Shown here: one piece after another, positions 2,224 to 63,135 of the stretch
Layout: each line of letters opens with the position of its first letter
Numbering within the stretch: position 1 is the stretch's first letter
NCBI GenBank assembly: GCA_002269645.1
Contig: NIVC01002493.1
Location: forward strand, 104,702-168,701
Source of the DNA: Macrostomum lignano
Lineage: Eukaryota
Direction of reading: 5' to 3'
Length of the DNA: 64,000 nt
Translations under genes and position numbers: made by a program
Notes under the pieces: model-generated
What the model was told of the DNA's origin: nothing
Database searches by the model: none
Seen by the model: only the letters and a program-made list of their open reading frames with translations

Positions 2224-3415
2224 ATGAGATTCAGTACAGGTAATTTTCGCTTGAGTCTTGCTGAGCTGCGAGCTCCGCTTCTCTTGCTGCTCTGCCTGAG
2301 TGCTATGGCCAGTATCGTCTCTGCTACTAAGACGTCCTTCGAGAAGACCCGACGCTGCCCCACCGCGGCCGCCTCTCCGCTGCCTGGCCTGGCCAGCAAG
2401 CTGCAGTGCGCCGCCGCCTGCTCCCGACTGCCCACATGCAACGCATTCCACTTCGACATCACCACCCGCCTGTGTTACCATGGAGACGCGTGTTCCCAAC
2501 TCGAGCAATGGACTGACGGCGACTGCGACTCCTACAAGTACACCGATGTGCTGTGCGGAGACCGCGGTGAGCGGCTCAGTGGCTGCTGTCTTGACAATTC
2601 TGTATCGCTTCAATGAAATCATTTACTTTGTTTAAACTGATTATAAATTTATCACTGCAGAGTCTTCTGAGCCCCTGGTCAAACCGCTCAAGCTGAAGCT
2701 GTTCTACAAGTTCTCTCGGGGCGGTCTGAAGAATGAGGTCAACCCGAGACTGTCCTGTCTCAAGGCTCACGACGTGACAATTGATGCAGCTGGTGCTCAC
2801 TTCAAGGGCAACACGGGCTCCTACTTGAGCACTGAGACTCCCGGGTTCTGGAACTTCCTATCGATGAACCGAGCATTCTCAGCGTTTACTAGAGTCAGAC
2901 ACCATTTTGGCAATGGGTATTGCACTTTTTAAAGTACTGCGTATGTTTCAATTCTAATTTAATGCATCCGTAGTACTGTAACTTTACACCATCTTTATTT
3001 CAGCTATCAGTTCTACCACAAATTCCAGCAGTGCAAGGGTAATGTGGGAAACACTTTTGCTAAAAGCAACGACTACATCTACAACGTAGCTGTGCTCGAC
3101 AACAATGCCGTGCTGTTCTCATTGTCGCCATCAATTCTACCCTCCGGTGGCCTGCAAAAAGAGATTTCAGTTGGTTTCACATTCAACAGAACTGCGCATC
3201 AGCAATTCTTCTTCAACGGCTCCATCGCTCCGGTTTTCTACGCCTACTCAGAGGCGAACACTTATTCGACAAGTCTGTTCGAGTGCCTTCGCCTGGGCCA
3301 ATCGCTGGTTGATGCCAACTGCCTCAACGGCGTCATGCTGTGCTACGGATTCAGCGCAAAAGTGCTGAGCGTCAGCGACTTTGAGCAGCTCAAGCGGCTC
3401 TGCGACTCCGATTGA
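2224..3415 (+). CDS. Secreted PAN/apple + LamG/ConA-like domain protein (3 exons, 336 aa)
   Basis: join(2224..2566,2661..2916,3004..3415) is 1011 nt, GT-AG, with matching phases. It has a hydrophobic signal (APLLLLLCLSAMASIVSA), a PAN pattern (QCAAACSRLPTCNAFHF..RLC) and a C-terminal LamG-like segment (VGFTFN..FFFNG, LNGVMLCYGFSAKVLS). Domain names come from motif recognition only. Confidence 0.75.
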
Positions 3416-4040
3416 ACAGCTGGAAAGCGATTTTTGCCAACGGAAATTAAAAGGAAGGTCCTGAACTGCGTGTAAAACTGACCGTGACGTGTCGCATAAC
3501 TGAAAGAAAACAATTTTAATTGAACCGCAGGCAATGCTGAGAAACAATGGCACGACAAAAATTGTTTTTCGAATTCGTGACGAAATGAAAAAATCTGAAT
3601 TAGGAGAAATTTCTGAGAAAGGCACGACGCTTGTTAAAATAAAGTTTTCATCAAGCATCTTCTCAAGCTTTGATAACCAGCAGTTGAGGCTTGATCAGAG
3701 ATATCAGAGAGATTCGCGCTAGGGTGGTCTCCAAAGTCACCTGTTGCCACCTGTTGAAGGTCCAGAAGGCGGAGTGGGCAACAAGATGATGAAATTTTTT
3801 TGAGGCTCGGCAGTGCTGATTCTGTTCAATACTTAAATGCTCAAGGGAAAAATTCGATTTTTTGGCGAAATCGTTGAATATCTCGACGGTTCGGAAGGCT
3901 GGCGACTTGATTCTTGTTTGAGGTGTGCGACAAAAGTTAGTCCGTCTTCTTGAGAGTTGTAAGTAAGTTAGTAATATTTGCGAGTCAATATTAATATTTT
4001 CTCTTTAGATTGTGATTAATGCGTAAGAAACTGGCATTTA

Positions 4041-4306
4041 GACAGTGGCCTAGACAGGATGGGGGGGGGGCAGCAGCCCCCCCCCACCCCCCGCCCAATC
4101 GCCTAGGGGGCTGGGGTTGGGCGCGGCGGATACCAAAAACCAGGAGGCAATTGAGTGCCTGCGGCTCTAAAATGAGTGCCTGCGGCGCCAAAATGAGTGC
4201 CTGCGGCGCCAAAATAAGTGCCTGCGGTGCCAAAAGTGGCAGTGGCATAAGGCATGGCCAGCCAGGCCAACCCCCCCCAATTGAAATTCCTGGCTACGCC
4301 ACTGTC
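4041..4306. mobile_element. MITE with imperfect TIRs containing about 4 units of the 21-bp satellite
   Basis: Left end GACAGTGGCCTAGACAGGA; right end reverse complement GACAGTGGCGTAGCCAGGA. No clear TSD. Confidence 0.7.
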
Positions 4307-4312
4307 AGTTAG

Positions 4313-5260
4313 TCATCAAACAACGTCACAGGGCGCCTGGGTGCGAACTTAAACCGCGCCGCCGGCAGTGTCTGGGGGGCCGGCATCAGCCAGCAGGCAG
4401 TCGCCGAGTACGCGCCTGCCCCCGCCGATAGGGTGCCTGCAGCACCTCCTGCACCGGCTGTGGGCAGTACGACTCGGCTCGGATGAAACGGCCTGCTAGC
4501 TGGAGTCGCCGACGGCGCAACAGTTCGCTGGGACGGGACAGGCCGGTGCGGCGATAGAGTGCCGCATTGGTGACTCCCTCGTAGCCGATCTTGAAGGCGG
4601 CGCGCAGCAGGCCAGCATGCGCCGCATCGACCAGCTGTTCGAGCGAGTCCGTCAGCGTTCAGGTCTCGGCGTTGTACAACAGGACGATCTCGATCACCGC
4701 CTGGAACAACGCCGCCCTCTGGCTGTCGGGCAGGGCCTCGGACTACAGGATAACCCTCACGGAACGGAAGGCAGCGCAAACAAGTCCACGCCGACGTCGT
4801 AGGTCCTCGCGAACGTCAGGCACCAGACTGCCGAGGTAGACGAACTGCTGACAGCACGGAAGCTTCGTCGCCTGTCCGTCGGCGCCTCGGCAGAAAATTG
4901 CAGCCTCGATGTCGTCCGGCACGCAGAGCACGACGTTCTTCTGCGTGTTGACCAACAGGTCGACACCCGCCGCACCCAGTCAAGCACTAGGACCAACAGA
5001 AACGGCGCAAGCGTATCTCCCTGAAGCACCCCAGAAGATGTCTCAAAGAAATCCGACAGGCCGTCCGGTGTTAGCACAGCAGCGTTCGTGCCGTGATACA
5101 GCGCCATGACGGCGGAGAGCAGCTGCTCTGGCACGTCGTACGCACGAAGCACCATTGGGAGCACGGCCCTCACGACCGAGTCGAATGCCTTCCTGAAGTC
5201 AACACAAGGACCACTAGAAGTTACTTCTAGTGGTCCTTGAGTCAACAAAGAGAGCAATCA
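4313..5260 (-). mobile_element. Decayed, 5'-truncated RTE-clade non-LTR retrotransposon (RT fragment)
   Basis: Motifs IALFVDFRKAFDSV, SGVLQGDTLAPFL and FVYLGS are present. An internal deletion near 4965 removes the YADD region, and there are stops. Confidence 0.85.
5205..5239. mobile_element. 35-bp perfect hairpin insertion with 8-bp TSD
   Basis: CAAGGACCACTAGAAG-TTA-CTTCTAGTGGTCCTTG is flanked by AGTCAACA at 5197-5204 and 5240-5247. Removing it restores the RT motif ALFVDF. Confidence 0.85.
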
Positions 5261-6703
5261 GGCCTGTGGGCCGACGGGGAGCCAAACAATTAAAAAAGCA
5301 CAGCTGATCGAGAACGTCAAGCTGAGGTTCCAACGAAAAGCCGGCATCGCGGACTTCAAAGATAAAGCGAGCCTGGCAGTTGGTGTGCAGTGCGAGTGTG
5401 TGTCACCTTTTGAGTGTGATGAGGACGCACTTTTTCCCAAATTCCACGCTAGCACTGCACATGAAAAAAGCTCATGATTGCATCCACAATCTCTTGGTCA
5501 CGTGAGCAGTTTGGGTGGCAACAAGCTCAGCCAATCATGAGCTTGTGGATTAATCTGCGGATTGGCTAATCTATATACCTTCAAAATTCTCCCTGCTTGT
5601 CTCTCGCTGTCCCTCTCTTAGCTATAGGACCTAAACTGCTCGCCACACGATCAAGCTACCATGGGGCTGACCATCTGACAGGAGTGGGGGCCAGCAGGAC
5701 TCTTCTAATTGATTTATTTCTGAGACCTGAGGCCCGAAGGCTTCCCCAAAAGGGGGCCGAAAGGCCGAAACCCATCAAAGCATACAATAGATTGACACTA
5801 GGTGTACAGCTCGATCAAGATAAAGCTTAAACTGTGTGACCCTTTGTTTTCATTATACGAGTGTAACGAAAAATTACACATCGTACCACGGTAAATAAAA
5901 TTTTTTTGAGCCTGAAAGCCCTGAGCCAATACAATGGCACCTTTCAAAGTCTATAAATTAAGATGACTTCATCACAATTTCAAATTTTCTCATTAGAAGA
6001 ACTACGTAGCTACCCACGTATTGTCAGTTTAGTATGACAATGTCAATGACAACACGCTATACATTGCATTTTATGCAGCATTGGCTAAGATTTTTTAATC
6101 AGCCATTTTTTCATTATTGCAGTTTTAGTTTTATTTTTAGTTTATTTATTTTCTTAGTTCACTTATTGGTTTAGTTTCGCTTGTAGCAAGTCCACGACCA
6201 ACGGTTATTAGATTTAAATTAATTTAATCGTAGTTTTTAAGAGTGCAAATTCGCTTATTCATTCAAACAAAAGCTATACAATAATAATAAAGCGAAATCC
6301 CTACTAGATAAGAACTGACTTTTTAAGATAACTATACCAGATCAGAATATGTTTTAAAAGACCATAAGGTCTAGAACAAAAGCTGTATCGCTACACGTGG
6401 GAGAATTTGAATTAATTTTGGAAATGTAATATAAATTTTTCATATGCGTGTATAATACGATTCTGCTGATTGCGGCGTGCTGCAATTTTTTGGCACTGGA
6501 CCAGACTGACTGTTCTTGCTAATATTTTAGTTTTACAGGTTCAGTTTAGGCTTAATAAGTTAAGCTATTTGACTGATTAAAATTACATTATAAAAAAAGA
6601 AGTTTCAAATTCAATCCTTCAATTCAAATGCAATGTTAATGCTTTGTTTATTTTTGAACACTAGGCCCTTTTTGCTGTAGGCTGTAGCCAGGGTTTATGG
6701 ATT

Positions 6704-19784: not shown

Positions 19785-20969
19785 ATGCTGCCAGTTATGG
19801 ACCAGCAGCCTCAGCCCATTGAAGAAGTTGCTTGTCCGATGTGCTCTCGGCTGTTCTCAGCCGTCAGATTCGCTGAGTATTTGCGTCACTGCAACAGTCA
19901 CAGCATCGGGCAAGAGTCTGAGACTGAAAGTGTGCATGAGCAGGTGGTGGATCCTGGTGAGCAGAGAGATGAGCGGCCAGTTAATGAGCAAGTCGCTGAG
20001 CCAGAAGCAGATCGGGGTTCTCAGCAAGTTGGGCATTCGCTGAAGTGCCGGCACTGTGAAAGAGAGTTTGCCAACAGGCTGGAGTTGAGACGGCACGTCA
20101 GAAGTCATCAGAATCGCGTCATCGACATATCGTTGAGGTGCGATACTTGCGGCAAAGGTTTTTTTAGCCGAAGTGAGTTTTTGATTCATCGCCAAGTCAA
20201 GAAGCCGTTCAAGTGCTGCGCTTGCGACAAGTGCTTATGTAGCCGATTTAGTCTCCTCAATCATCACCGAGTGCACACAGGTGAAAAACCTTTCAAATGC
20301 GACGATTGCGAAAAATGTTTTGCTGAGCGGGGTACTTTAGTGGCTCATCGCCGTGTGCACACTGGTGAAAAGCCTTATAAATGCGACGAGTGTGGAAAAT
20401 GCTTTTCTGGGCTGGGTGTTTTATTGGCCCATCGCCGTGTGCACACAGGTGAAAAGCCTTATAAATGCGACGATTGCGGCAAATGCTTTGCTCGGCAGAG
20501 TAACTTATGGACTCATCGCCATGTTCACACAGGTGAAAAGCCTTATAAATGTGACGACTGCGGCAAATGCTTTTCACGCCAGAGTACCTTATTGCGTCAT
20601 CGTCGTGTCCATACAGGTGAAAAACCTTTTAAATGCGACGTCTGCGGCAAAGGCGTCGCTCATCAGAGTTACTTATTGGATCATCGTCGTGTTCACACGG
20701 GCGAAAAGCCATTTAAATGCGAGGTTTGCGGCAAATGCTTTGGTCAGCGGAATAACTTACGAACTCATCGCCGTGTCCACACAGCTGAAAAGCCTTATAA
20801 ATGCGACGAATGTGGCAGGTGTTTTTCTTTTCGAAGTAACCTTGTGGCTCATCGCCGAGTGCACACTGGTGGCAAGCAGTTCAAGTGTGACGATTGTGGC
20901 AAAAGTTTTCCTTGCCAAAACCGACTTTTGAAGCATCGCCGTGTGCACACCAGTAGCAAGCCAAGTTAG
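19785..20969 (+). CDS. Tandem C2H2 zinc-finger protein, copy 1 (394 aa, single exon)
   Basis: Repeated CxxC...HxxxH fingers with TGEKP(F/Y) linkers. Confidence 0.9.
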   Translation: MLPVMDQQPQPIEEVACPMCSRLFSAVRFAEYLRHCNSHSIGQESETESVHEQVVDPGEQRDERPVNEQVAEPEADRGSQQVGHSLKCRHCEREFANRLELRRHVRSHQNRVIDISLRCDTCGKGFFSRSEFLIHRQVKKPFKCCACDKCLCSRFSLLNHHRVHTGEKPFKCDDCEKCFAERGTLVAHRRVHTGEKPYKCDECGKCFSGLGVLLAHRRVHTGEKPYKCDDCGKCFARQSNLWTHRHVHTGEKPYKCDDCGKCFSRQSTLLRHRRVHTGEKPFKCDVCGKGVAHQSYLLDHRRVHTGEKPFKCEVCGKCFGQRNNLRTHRRVHTAEKPYKCDECGRCFSFRSNLVAHRRVHTGGKQFKCDDCGKSFPCQNRLLKHRRVHTSSKPS

Positions 20970-23827: not shown

Positions 23828-25168
23828 ATGGACCAGCAGCCTCAGCCCATTGAAGAAGTTGCTTGTCCGATGTGCTCTCGGCTGTTCTCAGCCGTCAGAT
23901 TCGCTGAGTATTTGCGTCACTGCAACAGTCACAGCATCGGGCAAGAGTCTGAGACTGAAAGTGTGCATGAGCAGGTGGTGGATCCTGGTGAGCAGAGAGA
24001 TGAGCGGCCAGTTAATGAGCAACTCGCTGAGCCAGAAGCAGATCGGGGTTCTCAGCAAGTTGGGCATTCGCTGAAGTGCCGGCACTGTGAAAGAGAGTTT
24101 GCCAACAGGCTGGAGTTGAGACGGCACGTCAGACGTCATCAGCATCGCGTCATCGACATATCATTGAGGTGCAATACTTGCGGCAAATGTTTTTCTAGCC
24201 GAAGTGAGTTTTTGATTCATCGCCAAGTCAAGAAGCCGTTCAAATGCTGCGCTTGCGGCAAGTGCTTATGTAGCCGATATAGTCTCCTCAATCATCACCG
24301 AGTGCACACAGGTGAAAAACCTTTCAAATGCGACGATTGCGAAAAATGTTTTGCTGAGCGGGGTGCTTTAATGGCCCATCGCCGTGTGCACACAGGTGAA
24401 AAGCCTTATAAATGCAACGATTGCGGCAAATGCTTTGCTTGGCAGAGTAGCTTATGGACTCATCGCCCTGTCCACACAGGTGAAAAGCCTTATAAATGCG
24501 ACGATTGCGGCAAATGTTTTTCTCAGCAGATTTCCTTAAGGACTCATCGTCGTGTCCACACAGGTGAAAAGCCTTTTAAATGCGACGAATGTGACAAATG
24601 CTTCGCTCAGCTGAATGTCCTTTTGGCTCATCGCCGTGGCCACACAGGAGAAAAACCTTATAAATGCGACGTCTGCGGAAAATGCTTTACTGAAAAAAGT
24701 GTATTATTGGCTCATCGCCCTGTCCACACAGGTGAAAAGCCTTATAAATGCGCCGATTGCGGTAAATGTTTTTCTCATCAGAGTTCCTTAAGGACTCATC
24801 GCCGTGTCCACAGAGGTGAAAAGCCTTTTAAATGCGACGACTGCGGCAAATGCTTTGCACAAAAGAGTCTATTAAAGGCTCATTTTCGTGTCCACATAGG
24901 TGAAAAGCCATTTAAATGCGACGACTGCGGCAAATGTTATGCTCACAAAAGTACCTTTTTGCGTCATCGTCGTGTCCACACAGGTGAAAAGCCTTTTAAA
25001 TGCGATGACTGTGGCAGCTGTTTTTCTTGCCCAAGTAACCTTGTGGCTCATCGCCGAGTGCACACTGGCGGCAAGCGGTTTAAGTGTGACGATTGTGGCA
25101 AAAGTTATTCTCGCCGAAACCGACTTTTGAAGCATCGCCGAGTGCACACCAGTAGCGAGCCAAGTTAG
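23828..25168 (+). CDS. Tandem C2H2 zinc-finger protein, copy 2 (446 aa)
   Basis: The N-terminal about 140 aa are near-identical to copy 1, followed by more fingers with TGEKP linkers. Confidence 0.9.
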
Positions 25169-28671: not shown

Positions 28672-38295
<9,624 letters not shown>

Positions 38296-38724: not shown

Positions 38725-39560
38725 AATCCTTCACCCCAATCTTCAACACCCACCACCCCAATTTCATCGCCCAGCACCCCAATCTTCAGCACCCACCACC
38801 CCAATTTCAACACCAACCACCCCAATCTTCAGCACCAACCACCCCAATTTCAACACCCCCACCCCAATTTCAACACCCACCACCCAAATTTCAACACCCA
38901 CCACCACAGTTTTCAACACCAACCACCCCAATCTTCAGCACCAACCACCCCAATTTCAACACCAACCACCCCAATCTTCAGCACCAACCACCCCAATTTC
39001 AACACCCACCACCCCAATTCAACACCAACCACCCCAATTTCAACACCCACCACAGTTTTCAACACCAACCACCCCAATCTTCAGCACCAACCACCCCAAT
39101 TTCAACACCCGCCACCCAAATTTCAACACCCACCACCACAGTTTTCAACACCAACCACCCCAATCTTCAGCACCAACCACCCCAATTTCAACACCCACCA
39201 ACCCAATTTCAACACCCACCACCCCAATCTTCAACACCAACCACCCCAATTTCAACACCCACCACCACAGTTTTCAACACCAACCACCCCAATTTCAACA
39301 CCCCACCACAGTTTTCAACACCAACCACCCCAATCTTCAGCACCAACCACCCCAATTTCAACACCCACCACCCCAACTTCAACACCAACCACCCCAATTT
39401 CAACACCCACCACCACAGTTTTCAACACCAACCACCCCAATCTTCAACACCCACCACCCCAATTTCATCGCCCAGCACCCCAATCTTCAGCACCCACCAC
39501 CCCAATTTCAACACCCACCACCCCAATGTCTAGCACCCACCACCCCAATCTTCAACACCG
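38725..39560. repeat. About 21-bp C/A-rich minisatellite between IARS1 and EMC4
   Basis: CACCAACCACCCCAATTTCAA-like units. Confidence 0.9.
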
Positions 39561-48083: not shown

Positions 48084-48964
48084 GATTTAAAGTCTTACGG
48101 GGGATTGCTGAAATGTAATTAAAGGCTACATAAGTTCAGAAGCTACATGTAGTAAATTATACAAAAAAATCTGTATTCATTTTTTGTTGGCTCCCCAACG
48201 GAAGGAGCTGCATGATTGCTAGTATTAATACTGAATTATTTGTTTCTATAAGAGCAAACCATCGCTTATTAGATTTGTTGTCCACTATATAGCTCTCTTC
48301 CACTGCAAGACTATCAGTGACATTGCACTTTGCTTTTTTTCAAGCGTAACATTTGGATACAATTACCTGATTGAATTATGAGAAAGAAAAAATGTGCCTG
48401 CCTATTAAAAATGACAGCGAAGTTGTTCTTGCTTAACTTTGTTAACTTGTTCTGTCTCTGCATGATTTCTGCGCTCTGCGATTAAAAGTGTCAGAACTTC
48501 GCAGGCACATCAGATTTGATGATGTAGCTGTCGGCTTGTTAGTGCACGGGCACTGGACATGCGTCGCCGACTGGGAGGGTTGCTTGTTACCGCGTGCATG
48601 CTGGGGTGGATGCACCGTTCTAACCCAAATATTTCGGCGTGCGACAATTGAGGTGGGCTCACGCTTTTGTTTAGTAGAGAAACTCATTCTCAACCACGCG
48701 CTCTTATAATACAATACAAGTATGTACGCTGAGTACACAGTTAAACATAGCAGTCTGTGTAATGCTATGGTGTAATGTAGAGAGGTGGAATTACGAGTAC
48801 AAGCTAAAAATAGAATCTGAGACTGACACAAGTGAGTTTAATAAAAACAGCTAAAATGAAAAGAGAGTATAATTTTATCAAATCAGATGAAAACCTAAAC
48901 AAGCCTGTACTCACAGTCTAAGTTCATATTCTACGACGTAACATACCTGCCTAGAAATGGGCAA

Positions 48965-49899
48965 TTTTCCACGAGGGTAAGATGCTTCTCCAGGAAAGTC
49001 TGCACCTCGGTGAGAACACCTCAGTTTTCCAAGCTGAAATTTGCGCCATTGAGCAGTGTGCCCAGCAACTGTTTCAGGCGAACATTAATAATTTTGACAT
49101 TAATTTCTACACTGATAGCCAAGCTGCTATTAAGGCCTTAACCACTGAGAATATCTCCGCTGCTACAGTATCTCAATGCCACCGCAGTGTGCAATCTCTC
49201 TCAGTCCTTAACAGGATTAGAATTATCTGGACACCTGGTCACAGCAACATCCTGGGCAACGAGCTCGCGGACTCTCTCGCCAAGGAGGGCAGCAACCCAG
49301 ACGGCAACCACCGTCTGATGAGGCTACCCACCCCCAGGTCGCAAGTCACCCGCCATATCAACAGGTGGCTCCATCAGCAGCACCAGCTCCACTGGAACAG
49401 CTGCACCGAGTACAGGCAGAGCCGCTCTGCCATGCCTAACCTGAACAGGAAAGTCTCTGATTATCTGATTTCGCTTAACAGAACCGACCTCAGGGAGATG
49501 TGCATGGTCCTAACCGGCCACGGATTCTTCCAGAGACATATATCGTTGCAAACCGGTTGCCCTCCCACCTGTCCCTTCTGTGGCATAGGAGAGGAGACCG
49601 CGGAGCATCACGTCACCTTCTGCCCTTACTTCAACAAGGCGCGGCACAAATACCTCGGCCACCCCAGCGGATGGACGAGCTGACCACCGCGGACAATATC
49701 CGAGACCTCCGCGCCTTCGTCCGGGACTCCGGCCGGATGAGGGTCGCCGATGCCTCCACTGCGGACCTGCCGACTACTGGCGGGGACTGGGCGCACCCCA
49801 AGGCTAATCCTTGTGCTCTTTTACCTTGGGGTTGCGATAGGGGCCTCGCGGCCTATTCGCGGCGCCTGCGCCCCCCGTCAGTAGTAAGTAAGTAGTAAG
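48965..49899 (+). mobile_element. 5'-truncated RNase H-encoding non-LTR retrotransposon (R1/LOA-like)
   Basis: Motifs [28 protein letters not shown] and CPFC..ETAEHH..FC; (AGTA)n tail; 13-bp TSD TAGAAATGGGCAA (48952-64, 49900-12). Confidence 0.9.
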
Positions 49900-49904
49900 T
49901 AGAA

Positions 49905-51303
49905 ATGGGCAACCATGTCGCCATACCGGATCCTGCGTATGATACATGTACCCTTCCGGTAAGATCCTTGCTGATTAGTTGCTATGTTTTGAGTACGCTC
50001 GTAGAATTTCTTCTGTTAGGTTTCGTGTCAAAGAATACTTCAGAGTGATTTGTTCCTTCTGCTCTTTTCATTGTACAGATCGAGTGTATAAGAGCTACAT
50101 GCAATAGCGTGCGCAATTGAGACCTTACCAAGAGACAGTGGCACCCTCCAAGAGACAGTGGCACCCTCCAAGAGACAGTGGCACCCTCCAAGATACAGTG
50201 GCACCCTCCAAGAGACAGTGGCACCCTCCAAGAGACAGTGGCACCCTCCAAGAGACAGTGGCACCCTCCAAGAGACAGTGGCACCCTCCAAGATACAGTG
50301 GCACCCTCCAAGAGACAGTAGCACCCTCAAAGATACAGTGGCACCCTCCAAGATACAGTGGCACCCTCCAAGATACAGTGGCACCCTCCAAGAGACAGCG
50401 GCACCCTCCAAGATACAGTGGCACCCTCCAAGATACAGTGGCACCCTCCAAGATACAGTGGCACCCTCCAAGAGACAGCGGCACCCTCCAAGATACAGTG
50501 GTACCCTCCAAGAGACAGTGGCGGCCTGCAACAAAAGACAATTATCAGCTAAACTGACCCTAATCATGCAGGATGCGCCCGGTGTCTCTCGGACCTTTCT
50601 TCCAAACGATGACGAAGACATGACGAATGAGTACTCAACAGTGCTAAAGAAAGTGGGAAAGCCAATTCGAGATAAAATCCATTCGGTGGCGAGAATAGAC
50701 AATAATGAGCTGGACCGCAGGCTCGCAGCCTCTAAAAATCGAGAGATGCCTGAGACTGACAGCCGGTCAACGCTGCTGAGCTTCTACACAACAAAACAAA
50801 ACGCTGAAGCAATCATACAGAACGGCTTCACGGTCGATCAGTATAGCAAGGGCCCGTTCGGTCACGGGATCTACTTTGTATCCAATGACTACAAGATTAA
50901 CGAAATAAAGACTTGCAACAATGGACGCCGCTGCCAGCTGCTGTGTGAGGTGGCTCTGGGCAAGCCGAAGGTCTGCGACACCCCCAACCGGTCGCTTGAC
51001 TCTGCCAAGTTGAAAGCCATGGGCTGCGACTCTGTGTTGTCTGGACAAAATAAGAAAAAGCAAAGCGCCAACGCCATCGACAGAGACGATGAGTACACGT
51101 ACGTTGTGTACTGTGCTGAGCAGGTGTCGCCCAGTTATTTGGTGACGTTCAGGTCAAGTAGATCCACAGGCGTGATGCTCGACAAAGCAGTGCAGTGCGA
51201 AGGAGTAGCGACAAGTCTTCCAGGCCTGATTACATTGATTGTGGATCTGGTATTGGACATAATGAGGTCACTCCGTAAGCGTAAAAAGACTAAACGCAGT
51301 TGA
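49905..51303 (+). CDS. MG-start, divergent PARP (ARTD) catalytic-like protein lacking the HG motif (2 exons, 261 aa)
   Basis: join(49905..49958,50572..51303) is 786 nt, phase 0/0, with a CTAAT branch point before the acceptor. PARP-like motifs IIQNGF, GPFGHGIYF, LLCEVALGK and DEYTYVVY are present, but LSFYTT replaces LFHGT. The C-terminus is hydrophobic then basic. Confidence 0.7.
50130..50525. repeat. 20-bp intronic minisatellite
   Basis: AGTGGCACCCTCCAAGAKAC, about 19 copies. Confidence 0.95.
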
Positions 51304-52676: not shown

Positions 52677-54298
<1,622 letters not shown>

Positions 54299-57324: not shown

Positions 57325-60300
57325 TCACAGAATCGAGCACTCTGACCCAAACTTGATTAGATATCTCGGGGTGGCTTGCTCCGCTCTGTACACGATGTAC
57401 TCGTCATTCAACACTCCTCCTTTTTTCTTCGAATTTCTTCTGGCAAACACGGAATCGTATCCAGCTGTTCTAACCTGCTCTAAGGTAAGACTGGTCTTTG
57501 GAGCATCGCACACCATTGTTTTACCCAGCAAGACATCGCAGAGCAGCAGCGATTTAATACCTGTTCCTTTGCAATACTGAGCGCTCTTGGTGCTATCGGT
57601 TGCGAAGTATATGCCAGCACCGAACATTCCGCTATTGCCAACCTTGAATCCATTCTGAATGATCATTTCAGCATTTTTTCTTGTAGTTCCGTGGAAAAGC
57701 AACTCCGGCACACAGTCCTTCTTGTGCATTTCGTTGTATACATTGAAAAGTTTCTTATCCAAGACTGGATTTTTGATTTTCTCAATGGAACGAATTTCCA
57801 ACTTAATATTGTGCTCCTTTAATGCGTATCGCAGAACTCGGTCGCTTATCTTATAGTACTCGACCGCAGTGTCTTCATTGTCAGCAGTGACTGGTGTACG
57901 TCTGATTCTGTCACCATCCTGACAAAGTTTGTTTGTCTGCACCTGGCTGGCCAGAGGCCAACAGCTGGAACAGAACTGGTCACTTATTCGACGTAAAGAT
58001 GATTCGCGGTCGAGCCGTTCAGTGTGCCCGCAGCGAAACGTTCTTAACTCGTCGTTCTAAAAATGAATTGTTGGCAACACTGCAAATCCTTTCATATTGA
58101 GCATGCGCTCGTATCTTTTATTAACAAATCCCTTTGGAAAATGTTTACAGATCACCTTACCCACAGGTGCACAGCCATGTCCTGAAGACTGTTAAACTCT
58201 TCAATCAAGATGCCTAACTGGTCCTTGACATCCGTGCGTAAAACTGAATTTCCTCGATTTTCCTCTATCAGTTTGTAACCCAGTGTGCGGACATTTTCCA
58301 CTGTCCACGATCTGCTATCGATCTCTTTGCGTAGCTTTTGAAGGATCCTTTGTCTACGAACCTCCTTATGCTCTGGTGAAGGCTGAGAATCGTCTATCTG
58401 ACAGTGTCTTGTCATGTTGTAATGAAGGGCAGATATCCAGCATCGACAGTCGCGAAATTTCTGCCAATACTGCTGCAGAAGTGATTGATCAGGGGTGCAT
58501 AGCTTTGCGGGACCAATTGACGCTGCTTCGGCCAATTGATTGTAACCAGCGCCCTGCAGACAGTTTCGTGAATGCTTGAATGCAAAAACTCTGTCCAGTT
58601 AAAATAATAGCAATAAAAATATATCAGCTGGTCAGCCCCATAAGAGAAGACAGCGAGAGACAAGCGGTCAGAATTCCAACGATAGAGATTAGATAATCCT
58701 GAGATTAAGCTAACCCGCCACCAACAACCCATGAGAACTAGCTAAACAAACCAGCTCTTTCGAAATCGGATTTCCGACTTGAAATGGCACTGGACTTACC
58801 AGCCAACAAGTGTTTTTGATATTCAATCTCGAATTCGTAGCCAATAAAAGGGACACTGCTGAGACTGGATCGCATTGACATGTGTGGAGTCTAGCTCCAA
58901 ATGAATAAGAATAAGATTGTGCACGAGCGTGTGTGTGAGCCTCGTAGGCCAGCTCGATCTTGGTTCGTAGCTTCTTACAGAGGCGCCAGGCCTCGGGCTT
59001 CTTTATTTATCTCTCTCTGCTTCCCAGCTTGGGGGAAGACAACCGGCAGGCCTATGCTTGTTGGGGGTGCGGGGTGCAGACAGACAGACTTGTGCATAGG
59101 ACTTGTGCGTGCATTGGCCGTACAGTGATGACTGTAACGGCTAGACAAAGACCGGTGCCTGGTGGGACTGAGGAGTGCGAGTACGAGCTAACCGATAGAC
59201 AGACACTACAACATGCAGGAAGCGAGAACTTTTGTAGGGGGGGGGGGTGCTTTTATGCTGAAAAGCCTCTATACACAGCTGAATGTACGTACTATTAAAT
59301 TCTATTGAATTCAAGGAAGTTCAGGAACTATTCGGAAACCCAGGTAGTCCAGAAGTGTTGAGAGGCCCCGGAAGACCTGGTATGATATTGCCTCTGCTTA
59401 GGTCTGCGGGCACCCTCCATACGAGGGCCCACCTTGCTTCCTAAGATCCCAGCTTTTGTCAGCAGACGTATTTTCGAAGCGTCCGAAAGTGTACCCAAAT
59501 CATGGGGCCACCCATCCTGCTCTTCAATAGAACTCACTTTCGCACTGGCAGAGGCTCCCTGCGGCCAAATTCTGGGGTTGAGAATACCAAACTAGAGACC
59601 TGTCTTCTAATACAGCTAGCATACAGCCTTTCCCGGTCCGCTGTTACCTATTCTCGTAGTGAGCTACCTCAAGACAAATGTTCCAGCGGTCAGAGACAGA
59701 CTTCGGAAAGTATGCAGACCGGATCACCATTGCGGGTAAGTGCTCAACCGTGATATTCGCTAGTAGGATATGAAGACAAACAAGTCATGGTAATGCATTT
59801 ATGCTATATTAACAAAATTAAAACTACTCACCATTTTTTGTTGAACAACCTCGTTCAAGTCGGACATTTTTTGGCCGATGTCACGAATTTGCTTTCTGAT
59901 TTCCGCGCACAAATCTTTGTTCCCGAAATTTTCTTCCGCGAGCTTACCTCCCATTGACTGAACTTTAATTACTAGACTTTGCCTTTTTTTAAGCTCGTGC
60001 ATAAGTTTCATTTGTTGCTCCTGCGTCTCCAGGGGAATCGACTGGTCCAAAACACCGGACAGGGTCCGCTCAATCCAGCATTGGCTATCATGTAGAAAGT
60101 CAAAAAACGAATGCTGGTCCGGTTCCGACTGAAGCTCTTCAACTAATTTGTCCAGCTTGAAAACTGATTCCAACATATTGTTCCTTCTCCGCCGTGGTTG
60201 GCTAGGTCCTTCGCTAAATCGTCTGCGACGCAACGATCCACCTCTGTCTCGTTGGAAGTTCGAATGCGGGCTGCTCAATTGCAGCCCTCTGGTGCTATGG

Positions 60301-61034
60301 AACTCGCACGGTCTACGCTACAAAGTTAAATAGATTGCTAATAGTTTTCTCATTTATGCTTTTTATCGTTAGTTAGTTAGTACGCTCGTAGATACATTTT
60401 ACGAGTAGTATACTAGCTACAATAGTCGCCTTTTAAAAAAGTTCAAAAGTGATTTAGCAGTGCGAAAAAACTTCTGACTTCAGCCACTATTCAGGATTTG
60501 AGCATGAAACTAGTTAATTAGAACGAGACAAAGCGCAGGGGCTGGTGAGTGGGGATGGTGATTAAAACTATTAATCAATAACTGCTGATTTTGCTTGACA
60601 CAATCAAATATGTTTAATTATAACACGCAAGTTATACTTTGAAATAATTAGTAAAGCAGAGCTCGAATTGATTAAAAGAAAGTCTTTATCACCTGTCCAG
60701 TTGCCTTTTGGTTTCTATCTTCAGGCTTGCAAGTTGAACAGACAATTTGAAATCTAGTTTTTGCTCGGCATTCTGAACAGAATCTTGTCCAAAGCTTCTC
60801 TGCATGACCAGGGGAAGATTCTTCACATATCGAGCACCGCTTCCACCAAGAACCCAGTGGATGTGGGCACTGACTTGAGTTTGAAGCTGCAGAAGGACAT
60901 TCCAAGCAAAAGTAGGTGAACGGATCATTTTCACCGCATTCTTCGCAAAATTTTCTAAAAATATTGTCGTCAACGAAATGACACCTCCAACATTTTTTTC
61001 GAGCAGTAGCCACAGTGTGAATGCAGTTAGCCAT
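57325..61034 (-). CDS. Zn-module x2 / spectrin-like repeat x2 / PARP catalytic (H-Y-E) protein, 4 exons, about 650 aa
   Basis: complement(join(57325..58056,58161..58553,59832..60317,60693..61034)). All three introns are GT-AG and phase 0 (donors GTGATA, GTGAGT, GTAAGG). PARP motifs: LLFHGT, GMFGAGIYFA, TKSAQY, LLLCDVLLG, NDEYIVY. Confidence 0.7.
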
Positions 61035-62894: not shown

Positions 62895-63135
62895 AACTGT
62901 TATTAAGGCGCCCAGCGCCAGATCAATAGGCTGGTCTTGTGGTCAACACACTTAATACCGAGGTTCTCACCGTGTCGGCTGATTTCCCAGAGTACCTGTA
63001 CGGTATACATGTATGCCTCAGCGCAGAAGACCATGCGCTCGCCCGCTGCCAGCGGTTCACCTACCTTGGCGGTCTGGTGCTCCACATAGAGGAGGACATC
63101 TGGCGGCGCATAGGACTCGCCTGGGCGGCCTACTG
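62895..63135 (+). mobile_element. Short RTE-clade RT fragment
   Basis: VNTLNTEVL..RCQRFTYLGGLV..IWRRIGLAWAAY* resembles the element at 4313-5260. Confidence 0.65.

Follow-up and report, generated by a model that had tools for sequence, protein, structure and literature searches.

A transcribed PARP-family gene of Macrostomum lignano predicted to join a duplicated Cys/His head and two spectrin-like repeats to a tankyrase-like catalytic domain

The members of the PARP family are largely defined by their accessory domains, which set where and when the catalytic ADP-ribosyltransferase (ART) domain acts. In several of these enzymes cysteine-rich modules lie N-terminal to the ART domain and follow a targeting or activating logic, examples being PARP1 (Zn1-3), PARP7, PARP12 and PARP13 (CCCH fingers) and PARP6 and PARP8 (C4), the C4 finger of the last two having no characterised relatives among human proteins (PMC10450202). 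Tankyrase-1 and tankyrase-2 possess ankyrin repeat clusters, a SAM domain and a zinc-binding loop within the ART domain, the integrity of this domain reportedly depending on the loop, which is treated as tankyrase-specific and structurally important (PMC9688111). Spectrin, alpha-actinin, dystrophin, utrophin and the plakins contain three-helix units of ~100 amino acids (aa) with a tryptophan in helix A. The present work concerns BOX15_Mlig019380g1, a gene of the free-living flatworm Macrostomum lignano on the minus strand of a 64,000-nucleotide stretch of contig NIVC01002493.1 (assembly GCA_002269645.1, positions 104,702 to 168,701), hereafter the window. We put at roughly 60% the probability that it is a transcribed member of the PARP family whose product has a zinc head, an Arg-rich linker, two flexibly joined spectrin repeats, a CHCC element and a tankyrase-like ART domain, and which acts by a mechanism of the kind proposed below.

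The combination of spectrin repeats and zinc modules with a PARP domain would be a new domain-architecture variant of the family, as it was found described nowhere in the sources searched. The word 'spectrin' has no occurrence in a pan-domain survey of PARP distribution (PMC4245714), a re-annotation of human PARP domains (PMC10450202), a study of tankyrase evolution and a survey of fungal PARPs. Full-text literature searches likewise returned nothing for spectrin together with PARP; an automatic annotation may exist elsewhere. This agrees with a first-pass annotation, made from the sequence of the window alone, which knew of no ADP-ribosyltransferase (ARTD) family with spectrin repeats.

The coding sequence consists of four exons, the lengths of which are all divisible by three, and three phase-0 GT-AG introns (donors gtgata, gtgagt and gtaagg; acceptors ttgtag, ctgcag and ttttag). 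The spliced product of 650 aa is letter-for-letter the same as GenBank PAA57413.1 (P0013; locus tag BOX15_Mlig019380g1; UniProt A0A267E750), and the frame of about 650 aa assembled from four minus-strand fragments in the first-pass annotation was thus exact. Counted from the reversed end of contig NIVC01002493.1 the gene occupies positions 2967-6676, so that 2966 bp separate it from the contig end, in keeping with the window forming the final 64 kb of this contig. From the N- to the C-terminus the protein has two Cys/His modules, an Arg-rich disordered linker, two spectrin repeats, a CxH-x17-CxxC element and the ART domain, with the following features (window positions):

57325..61034, minus strand: whole coding sequence of BOX15_Mlig019380g1, 650 aa, spliced product identical to P0013/PAA57413.1
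60693..61034, minus strand: exon 1, 114 aa (aa 1-114), the duplicated Cys/His head, putatively zinc-binding
60897..61025, minus strand: putative zinc module A, ligands C4, H6, C15, C18, C30, C33, C43 and C46
60729..60869, minus strand: putative zinc module B, ligands C56, H58, C67, C70, C86, C89, C99 and C102
60646..60716, minus strand: indel segment of ~73 bp that contains the 8 final codons of exon 1 together with its GT donor (60692) and that the window has and the sister loci L001 and L002 lack
60317-59832, minus strand: exon 2, 162 aa
60177..60317, minus strand: start of exon 2, aa 115-161, an Arg-rich linker (RRRRFSEGPSQPRRRR) modelled with low confidence (predicted local distance difference test, pLDDT, 22-39)
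59832..60116, minus strand: spectrin-like repeat 1, aa 182-276, three predicted helices, W195 in helix A (profile against the PDB, AlphaFold2, Foldseek)
58553-58161, minus strand: exon 3, 131 aa
58161..58487, minus strand: spectrin-like repeat 2, aa 299-407, three predicted helices, W315 in helix A (profile against the PDB, AlphaFold2, Foldseek)
58056-57325, minus strand: exon 4, 243 aa and the stop codon
57961..58032, minus strand: CHCC element C416-G-H418-x17-C436-x2-C439, preceding the catalytic domain, its ligands invariant in all seven aligned family members
57340..57870, minus strand: PARP (ART) catalytic domain, aa ~470-646, with PF00644 on record and a tankyrase match
57693-57691, 57609-57607 and 57402-57400, minus strand: codons of H529, Y557 and E626, respectively

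The GenBank annotation of M. lignano was derived from a genome-guided RNA-seq transcriptome (StringTie/TACO together with de novo assembly), with open reading frames (ORFs) called by TransDecoder (PMC5730564), so that the three splice junctions have indirect RNA support. BOX15_Mlig019380g1 is confirmed as a real protein-coding gene, which is transcribed and had been deposited earlier with its accessory domains unannotated. The names on record for PAA57413.1 are 'hypothetical protein' in GenBank and an automatic PARP name in UniProt, and PF00644 is its sole Pfam family. The earlier description of the protein as 'undescribed' does not hold, as the protein is in both databases, though with this one family only. 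No mention of the M. lignano PARPs or of the BOX15_Mlig019380g1 identifiers was found in the main texts of the papers searched and in two supplements. An older UniProt model, A0A1I8JN11 ('UL128'), has an upstream exon (62978-63058, minus strand) joined to the exon-2 acceptor at 60317, followed by a frame shift; this model is probably a prediction artefact, and it shows an independent choice of the acceptor at 60317. Model P0007, in which a different exon upstream is joined to this acceptor, was considered as evidence of another upstream exon and was rejected on account of a frame shift inside exon 2.

Relatives of the N-terminal parts were sought with residues 1-474 in an exhaustive phmmer search of 1.84 billion representative proteins, which returned six proteins, all from M. 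lignano. With the full protein as query, a word-index search covering 5.8 billion proteins returned only two M. lignano models. Two paralogues, P0003 (909 aa) and P0008 (984 aa), show the head, two repeats, the CHCC element and the PARP domain in unchanged order, together with a long AAPVVQLATSQPAPTTVQ repeat linker, and in both of them head and linker share one open frame of more than 330 aa. Since these paralogues carry the head in frame with linker, repeats, CHCC element and PARP domain, the head appears to belong to the protein. Identity to P0003 is 36% in the head, ~29% in the rod (the repeat region) and 62% in the CHCC-plus-PARP region. The earlier view that the exons form one gene rather than separate ones is therefore upheld, both by the identical transcript-derived coding sequence and by the same part order in a divergent paralogue.

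Other subfamilies of M. lignano have only the CHCC element and the PARP domain, or the PARP domain alone, and some of these proteins start with MGxxxSK; at least four PARP genes lie on the 286-kb contig NIVC01001462.1. For head and rod the expansion of the family can, on the sequences searched, be traced only within Macrostomum lignano, in line with the lineage-specific origin that had been suggested for the gene. There is also a 1084-nt Logan contig of SRR28338165 (L006), intron-less and transcript-like and coming from an unidentified sample, which codes for the end part of a helical segment together with an Arg-rich linker, a CGH...FCSKCW element and a PARP domain and resembles the M. lignano subfamily of P0006 and P0012. 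Because this contig encodes it, the CHCC-plus-PARP unit may also occur in a further dataset or species.

PF00644 is on record for the window protein (P0013) as well as for P0001, the product annotated at the sister loci. The closest solved relatives of the C-terminal domain are tankyrase-1 and tankyrase-2 over ~150 residues (E=2e-10 with the single sequence, E=8e-13 with a family profile), followed by PARP4 as the second-best and then by PARP2 and PARP1. The motifs FHG (H529), GIYF (Y557), KSAQY (K564, Y568) and DEY (E626), which had been picked out in the first-pass annotation, are all present and aligned with their tankyrase counterparts, the likeness covering the His-Tyr-Glu (H-Y-E) triad, the GIYFA..KSxQY block and the EY(I/V)(I/V)Y motif. 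No match to the helical regulatory domain of the PARP1 type was obtained in the PDB search, a further point in common with tankyrase. Foldseek with the full-length AlphaFold2 model, the C-terminus of which has pLDDT below 50, gave PARP1, ZAP and TNKS at E=7e-3 to 3e-2.

The rest of the protein differs from the tankyrases, its N-terminal partners being entirely different. Neither ankyrin repeat clusters nor a SAM domain were matched in a PDB search of the full protein, and the Pfam record holds only PF00644. In addition, the alignment to TNKS1/2 has a gap at the CHCC zinc loop of these enzymes (...CPxHKDRSCYICH...), a loop without counterpart in the ART domain of the M. lignano protein, and the loop from HG to GIYF is 3 residues shorter than that of tankyrase. 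Since the zinc loop is missing and there is no ankyrin or SAM match, the domain is tankyrase-like but the whole protein is not a tankyrase.

The helical parts of exons 2 and 3, read as spectrin-like in the first-pass annotation, passed both sequence-profile and fold searches. The profile was made from an alignment of four repeats, two from the BOX15_Mlig019380g1 protein and two from P0003, and its best match in the PDB was alpha-spectrin (1cun, E=3.1e-8), aligned end to end on repeats 16 and 17, with profile positions 1-100 placed onto residues 1-95 and 109-203 and the helix-A tryptophan included. Further matches were 1u4q, 5j4o, 8iah, utrophin and dystrophin, and the first repeat of P0003 matches both window repeats by tblastn (E=9e-8 and 2.5e-5). 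An AlphaFold2 sub-model of residues 161-412 (pLDDT 72) has two sets of three helices, at 22-45, 53-83 and 88-116 and at 139-168, 176-214 and 219-251 of the sub-model numbering. Its top Foldseek matches in the PDB are nearly all spectrin, actinin or plakin, with one repeat superposed on dystrophin R1 (3uun) at a template modelling (TM) score of 0.79-0.80 and a root-mean-square deviation of 2.4-2.7 A, and spectrin families again head the list obtained with the full-length model, which is of poorer quality. Taken from profile and model, the assignment of the helical exons as two divergent spectrin repeats is supported.

The protein departs from the spectrin family in having two repeats only, which are too divergent for the Pfam record, in lacking an actin-binding CH domain, an EF hand or any other cytoskeletal module, and in the link between the repeats, which is a flexible linker and not a continuous helix. 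This linker is ~20 aa long and of low confidence, sub-model residues 128-137 being non-helical with pLDDT below 50, and that of the paralogue is ~130 aa, low in complexity and likewise no continuous helix. The models thus point to repeats that are joined flexibly and not as a rigid rod, and the earlier name of 'rod spacer' is not retained. Spectrin repeats were also looked for in the P0017 and P0012 subfamilies by hhalign of the profile against their N-termini and are not claimed there, neither comparison being significant (E=0.074 and E=0.51).

The head encoded by exon 1 has two copies of a module of ~45 aa with the pattern C-x-H-x8-CxxC-x11/15-CxxC-x9-CxxC, at exactly the positions given in the first-pass annotation. 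Its six CxxC pairs within 114 aa were attained in 116 of 100,000 composition-preserving shuffles, and when module A is aligned to module B all eight ligands fall in register (BLASTP E=1e-4), which makes the head read as a genuine internal duplication. The head of P0003 (36% identity to aa 1-114) departs from this ligand set, with CNN for CxH in copy A and SADC for the last CxxC in copy B. The eight-ligand module described earlier is accordingly found in both copies here and not in this paralogue and, given these substitutions, the invariant core of the modules would comprise the inner ribbon and part of the outer pairs.

No match for the head (aa 1-114) was obtained in a PDB sequence search or, apart from the M. 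lignano paralogue, in the exhaustive phmmer search, and nothing below E=0.09 was found in NCBIfam. A word-index search with the head alignment gave no match either, and it is uninformative as it also missed the known paralogue. When a profile of four head modules was compared with the PDB, only C4 zinc ribbons were returned (eL37, the RNF213 N-terminus and NOB1), at non-significant E=0.17-1.4 and aligned on CxxC-x11-FCxxCG. The two knuckles expected of a zinc ribbon are present as C15xxC18-x11-KFC30xxC33G and C67xxC70-x15-RFC86xxC89, and likewise in P0003. The modules thus resemble C4 ribbons, the 'double zinc ribbon' among them, in the central CxxC-x11-(K/R)FCxxCG spacing and the FCxxCG knuckle, and differ from them in the extra CxH and C-terminal CxxC pairs, which have no counterpart there. 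No known zinc-ribbon family gave a significant profile match in the PDB or NCBIfam, and no Pfam family is on record.

RING, PHD, B-box, ZZ, LIM, FYVE and C1 were rejected for the head, as the order and spacing of the ligand pairs do not fit and no search matched them. The ligand pattern, as read from the sequence, also fits neither the CCHC fingers of the PARP1 type nor the CCCH fingers of PARP7/12/13, and the full-length PARP1 and ZAP chains in the PDB match only the catalytic region. The label of a zinc 'sensor' given to the head earlier was not borne out. A C-x2-H motif (CEFH, aa 118-121, window 60297-60308) lies 15 residues past the last CxxC of the head, across the junction of exons 1 and 2; it could be a relic of a third module or serve as an alternative ligand, and is not conserved in the paralogue.

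The remnant CGH..FCSSC noted earlier in exon 4 corresponds to C416, H418, C436 and C439 of the CHCC element, which is also present in the Logan contig. In all four head modules there are 8 residues from the outer CxH to the inner ribbon and 9 from the inner ribbon to the last CxxC, and in every paralogue 17 residues separate CxH from CxxC in the CHCC element, 17 being the sum of 8 and 9. These spacings suggest that the head module may be a CHCC clasp carrying a C4 ribbon insert in its loop. On this model ligand pairs 2 and 3 of each head module probably make up an ordinary C4 zinc ribbon, placed in the loop of an outer CxH...CxxC clasp that pairs 1 and 4 form, and the CHCC element may be that clasp without the inserted ribbon.

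Two sister loci, L001 and L002, which share 97-99% identity with the window, lack the ~73 bp segment with the exon-1 donor. Their exon-1 frame terminates with ...KPEDF*, and their annotated product (P0001, 489 aa) begins at M162, the codon of which, at window position 60176, is the start in the sister-locus models. As the distant paralogue has the head fused, the 73-bp loss looks derived and the fusion of the head ancestral. Across the 1611 sites compared in coding exons 2-4 the window and the sister loci show 8 differences, as against 28 across 1365 intron sites (Fisher p=1.3e-4), a pattern of divergence consistent with purifying selection. Exon 1, with differences at 0 of 316 sites between copies, is uninformative, as the 500 bp upstream are nearly identical too. 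Compared with L001 and L002, the window also has a 328-bp insertion in intron 2 (58883-59210), the sequence of which is not repeated elsewhere in the window.

In the mechanism proposed for this protein, the C-terminal domain is predicted to be an active NAD+-dependent ADP-ribosyltransferase, the spectrin repeats would serve as platforms for protein docking or self-association on flexible tethers, and the zinc head may pick the target or the place of action. The 73-bp deletion in the two sister loci would uncouple the head and give a head-less form of 489 aa. If the enzyme is active, ADP-ribosylation would reach more cellular contexts. As an established transgenic regeneration model (PMC5730564), M. 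lignano would in principle allow the function of the gene to be tested, and a natural comparison for the role of the head is offered by the three near-identical loci, of which one carries it and two do not. Everything past the architecture is inferred, and lineage-specific PARP architectures are common in eukaryotes, so that the gene is a moderate and not a major surprise.

Several points weigh against this account of the gene. The junction of exons 1 and 2 is backed through transcript assembly and not through reads viewed directly. Of the three near-identical loci, two cannot splice the head on, so that the head may be dispensable, and the fused head of the first-pass annotation applies to the window locus and not to the two that have no exon-1 donor. 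P0003 keeps only seven ligands per head copy, and neither a zinc family nor the spectrin family (PF00435) is among the precomputed Pfam hits of P0013 and P0003. The Foldseek E-values for the repeats are weak, at 9.5e-3 or worse. The full-length AlphaFold2 model, with 7 sequences in its alignment, has a mean pLDDT of 47.9 and falls below 50 in the head and in residues 501-650. Finally, the argument from 8+9=17 is only numerical and the agreement possibly a coincidence.

The sequence of the ART domain does not tell mono- from poly-ADP-ribose as its product. One reading, to be taken tentatively and at rather less than even odds, is that of a true poly(ADP-ribose) polymerase which, like tankyrase, builds chains. 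In its favour, tankyrase is the closest solved relative, H529, Y557, E626, K564 and Y568 all align with their tankyrase counterparts, the two GIYFA...KSxQY blocks are almost the same, and no helical regulatory domain of the PARP1 type was matched. The first-pass annotation had gone further and taken this residue set as that of PAR-forming enzymes. H-Y-E is, however, required for polymer formation without being a guarantee of it, as PARP3 and PARP4 have these residues yet act as mono-transferases. PARP4, designated a mono-ADP-ribosyltransferase by its PDB depositors, is moreover the second-best match here, and the tankyrase zinc loop is absent and the HG-GIYF loop 3 residues shorter. The residue set is thus insufficient for that conclusion.

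It is unlikely that exon 1 is no functional part of the enzyme and represents a separate small zinc-ribbon ORF or an upstream ORF, its fusion being specific to one copy or to transcript assembly. In favour of such a reading, L001 and L002 have no donor, and they have a stop that ends the exon-1 frame and an annotated product starting from M162, and exon 1 is not in the older UniProt models P0002 and P0007; nevertheless, it is included in the transcript-derived GenBank coding sequence, and the head is kept in frame in P0003 and P0008 despite a head identity of 36%. More improbable again is the reading as a member that has lost catalysis or is decaying, in a family with fast turnover, and that is in effect a scaffold or a nascent pseudogene. 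The family is indeed expanded and clustered, with the at least four PARP genes of NIVC01001462.1, the copies differ by indels, loss of the head included, and a neighbouring gene at 49905-51303 is without the catalytic His. Against decay, the 650-aa frame is intact with all catalytic residues retained, the exons are ~4 times less diverged than the introns (p=1.3e-4), and the catalytic region is 62% identical to that of the paralogue, compared with 29-36% in rod and head. The gene is therefore preferably read as that of a PARP-family enzyme with spectrin repeats and a zinc head. An extended form of this reading, which we regard as a long shot, would see in the head a new two-zinc fold, with a C4 ribbon nested in a clasp and the bare clasp reused beside the catalytic domain. 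The proteins with zinc head, spectrin repeats and PARP domain would then make up a flatworm-specific ADP-ribosylation system, in which a tankyrase-like enzyme that forms polymers is tethered either to a scaffold of the spectrin type or to a ligand, be it nucleic acid or protein; a fast-evolving family for defence or stress is one possible setting for it.

The neighbouring gene at 49905-51303 (plus strand, convergent) is a second PARP-like gene of the window, with its PARP-like part at 50563-51156 and a product of 261 aa in the GenBank annotation. It has 38% identity to the catalytic domain of BOX15_Mlig019380g1, and LLSFYTT replaces LLFHGTT at the catalytic His-Gly. Because of this replacement the product probably does not bind NAD+ in the normal way. 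This pair of PARP genes recurs at both the sister locus L002 and the paralogue locus L005. Within the span of this gene, just upstream of the PARP-like part, lies a tandem array with a period of 20 bp and ~20 copies (50128-50522), which can be read through in each of the three frames, giving repeated peptides such as RDSGTLQETVAPSKRQWHPP.

At ~48900-49700 (plus strand) an RNase H-like stretch (weak PDB matches to reverse-transcriptase RNase H, E ~0.005) and, after it, a CPFCG...H..FCP knuckle share an open frame, which looks like the tail of a retroelement. Two further ORFs on the plus strand (19785-20969 and 23828-25168) contain arrays with a period of 84 bp, the consensus unit of which resembles tandem C2H2 zinc fingers in an untranslated reading. 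Other arrays are (GACA)n with ~378 copies at 52732-54246, a 21-bp unit repeated 70 times at 36649-38129, a 21/43-bp unit at 38732-39559 and a 35-bp unit repeated 22 times at 33511-34287. The long simple and minisatellite arrays of the window cause strong local GC and AT skews.

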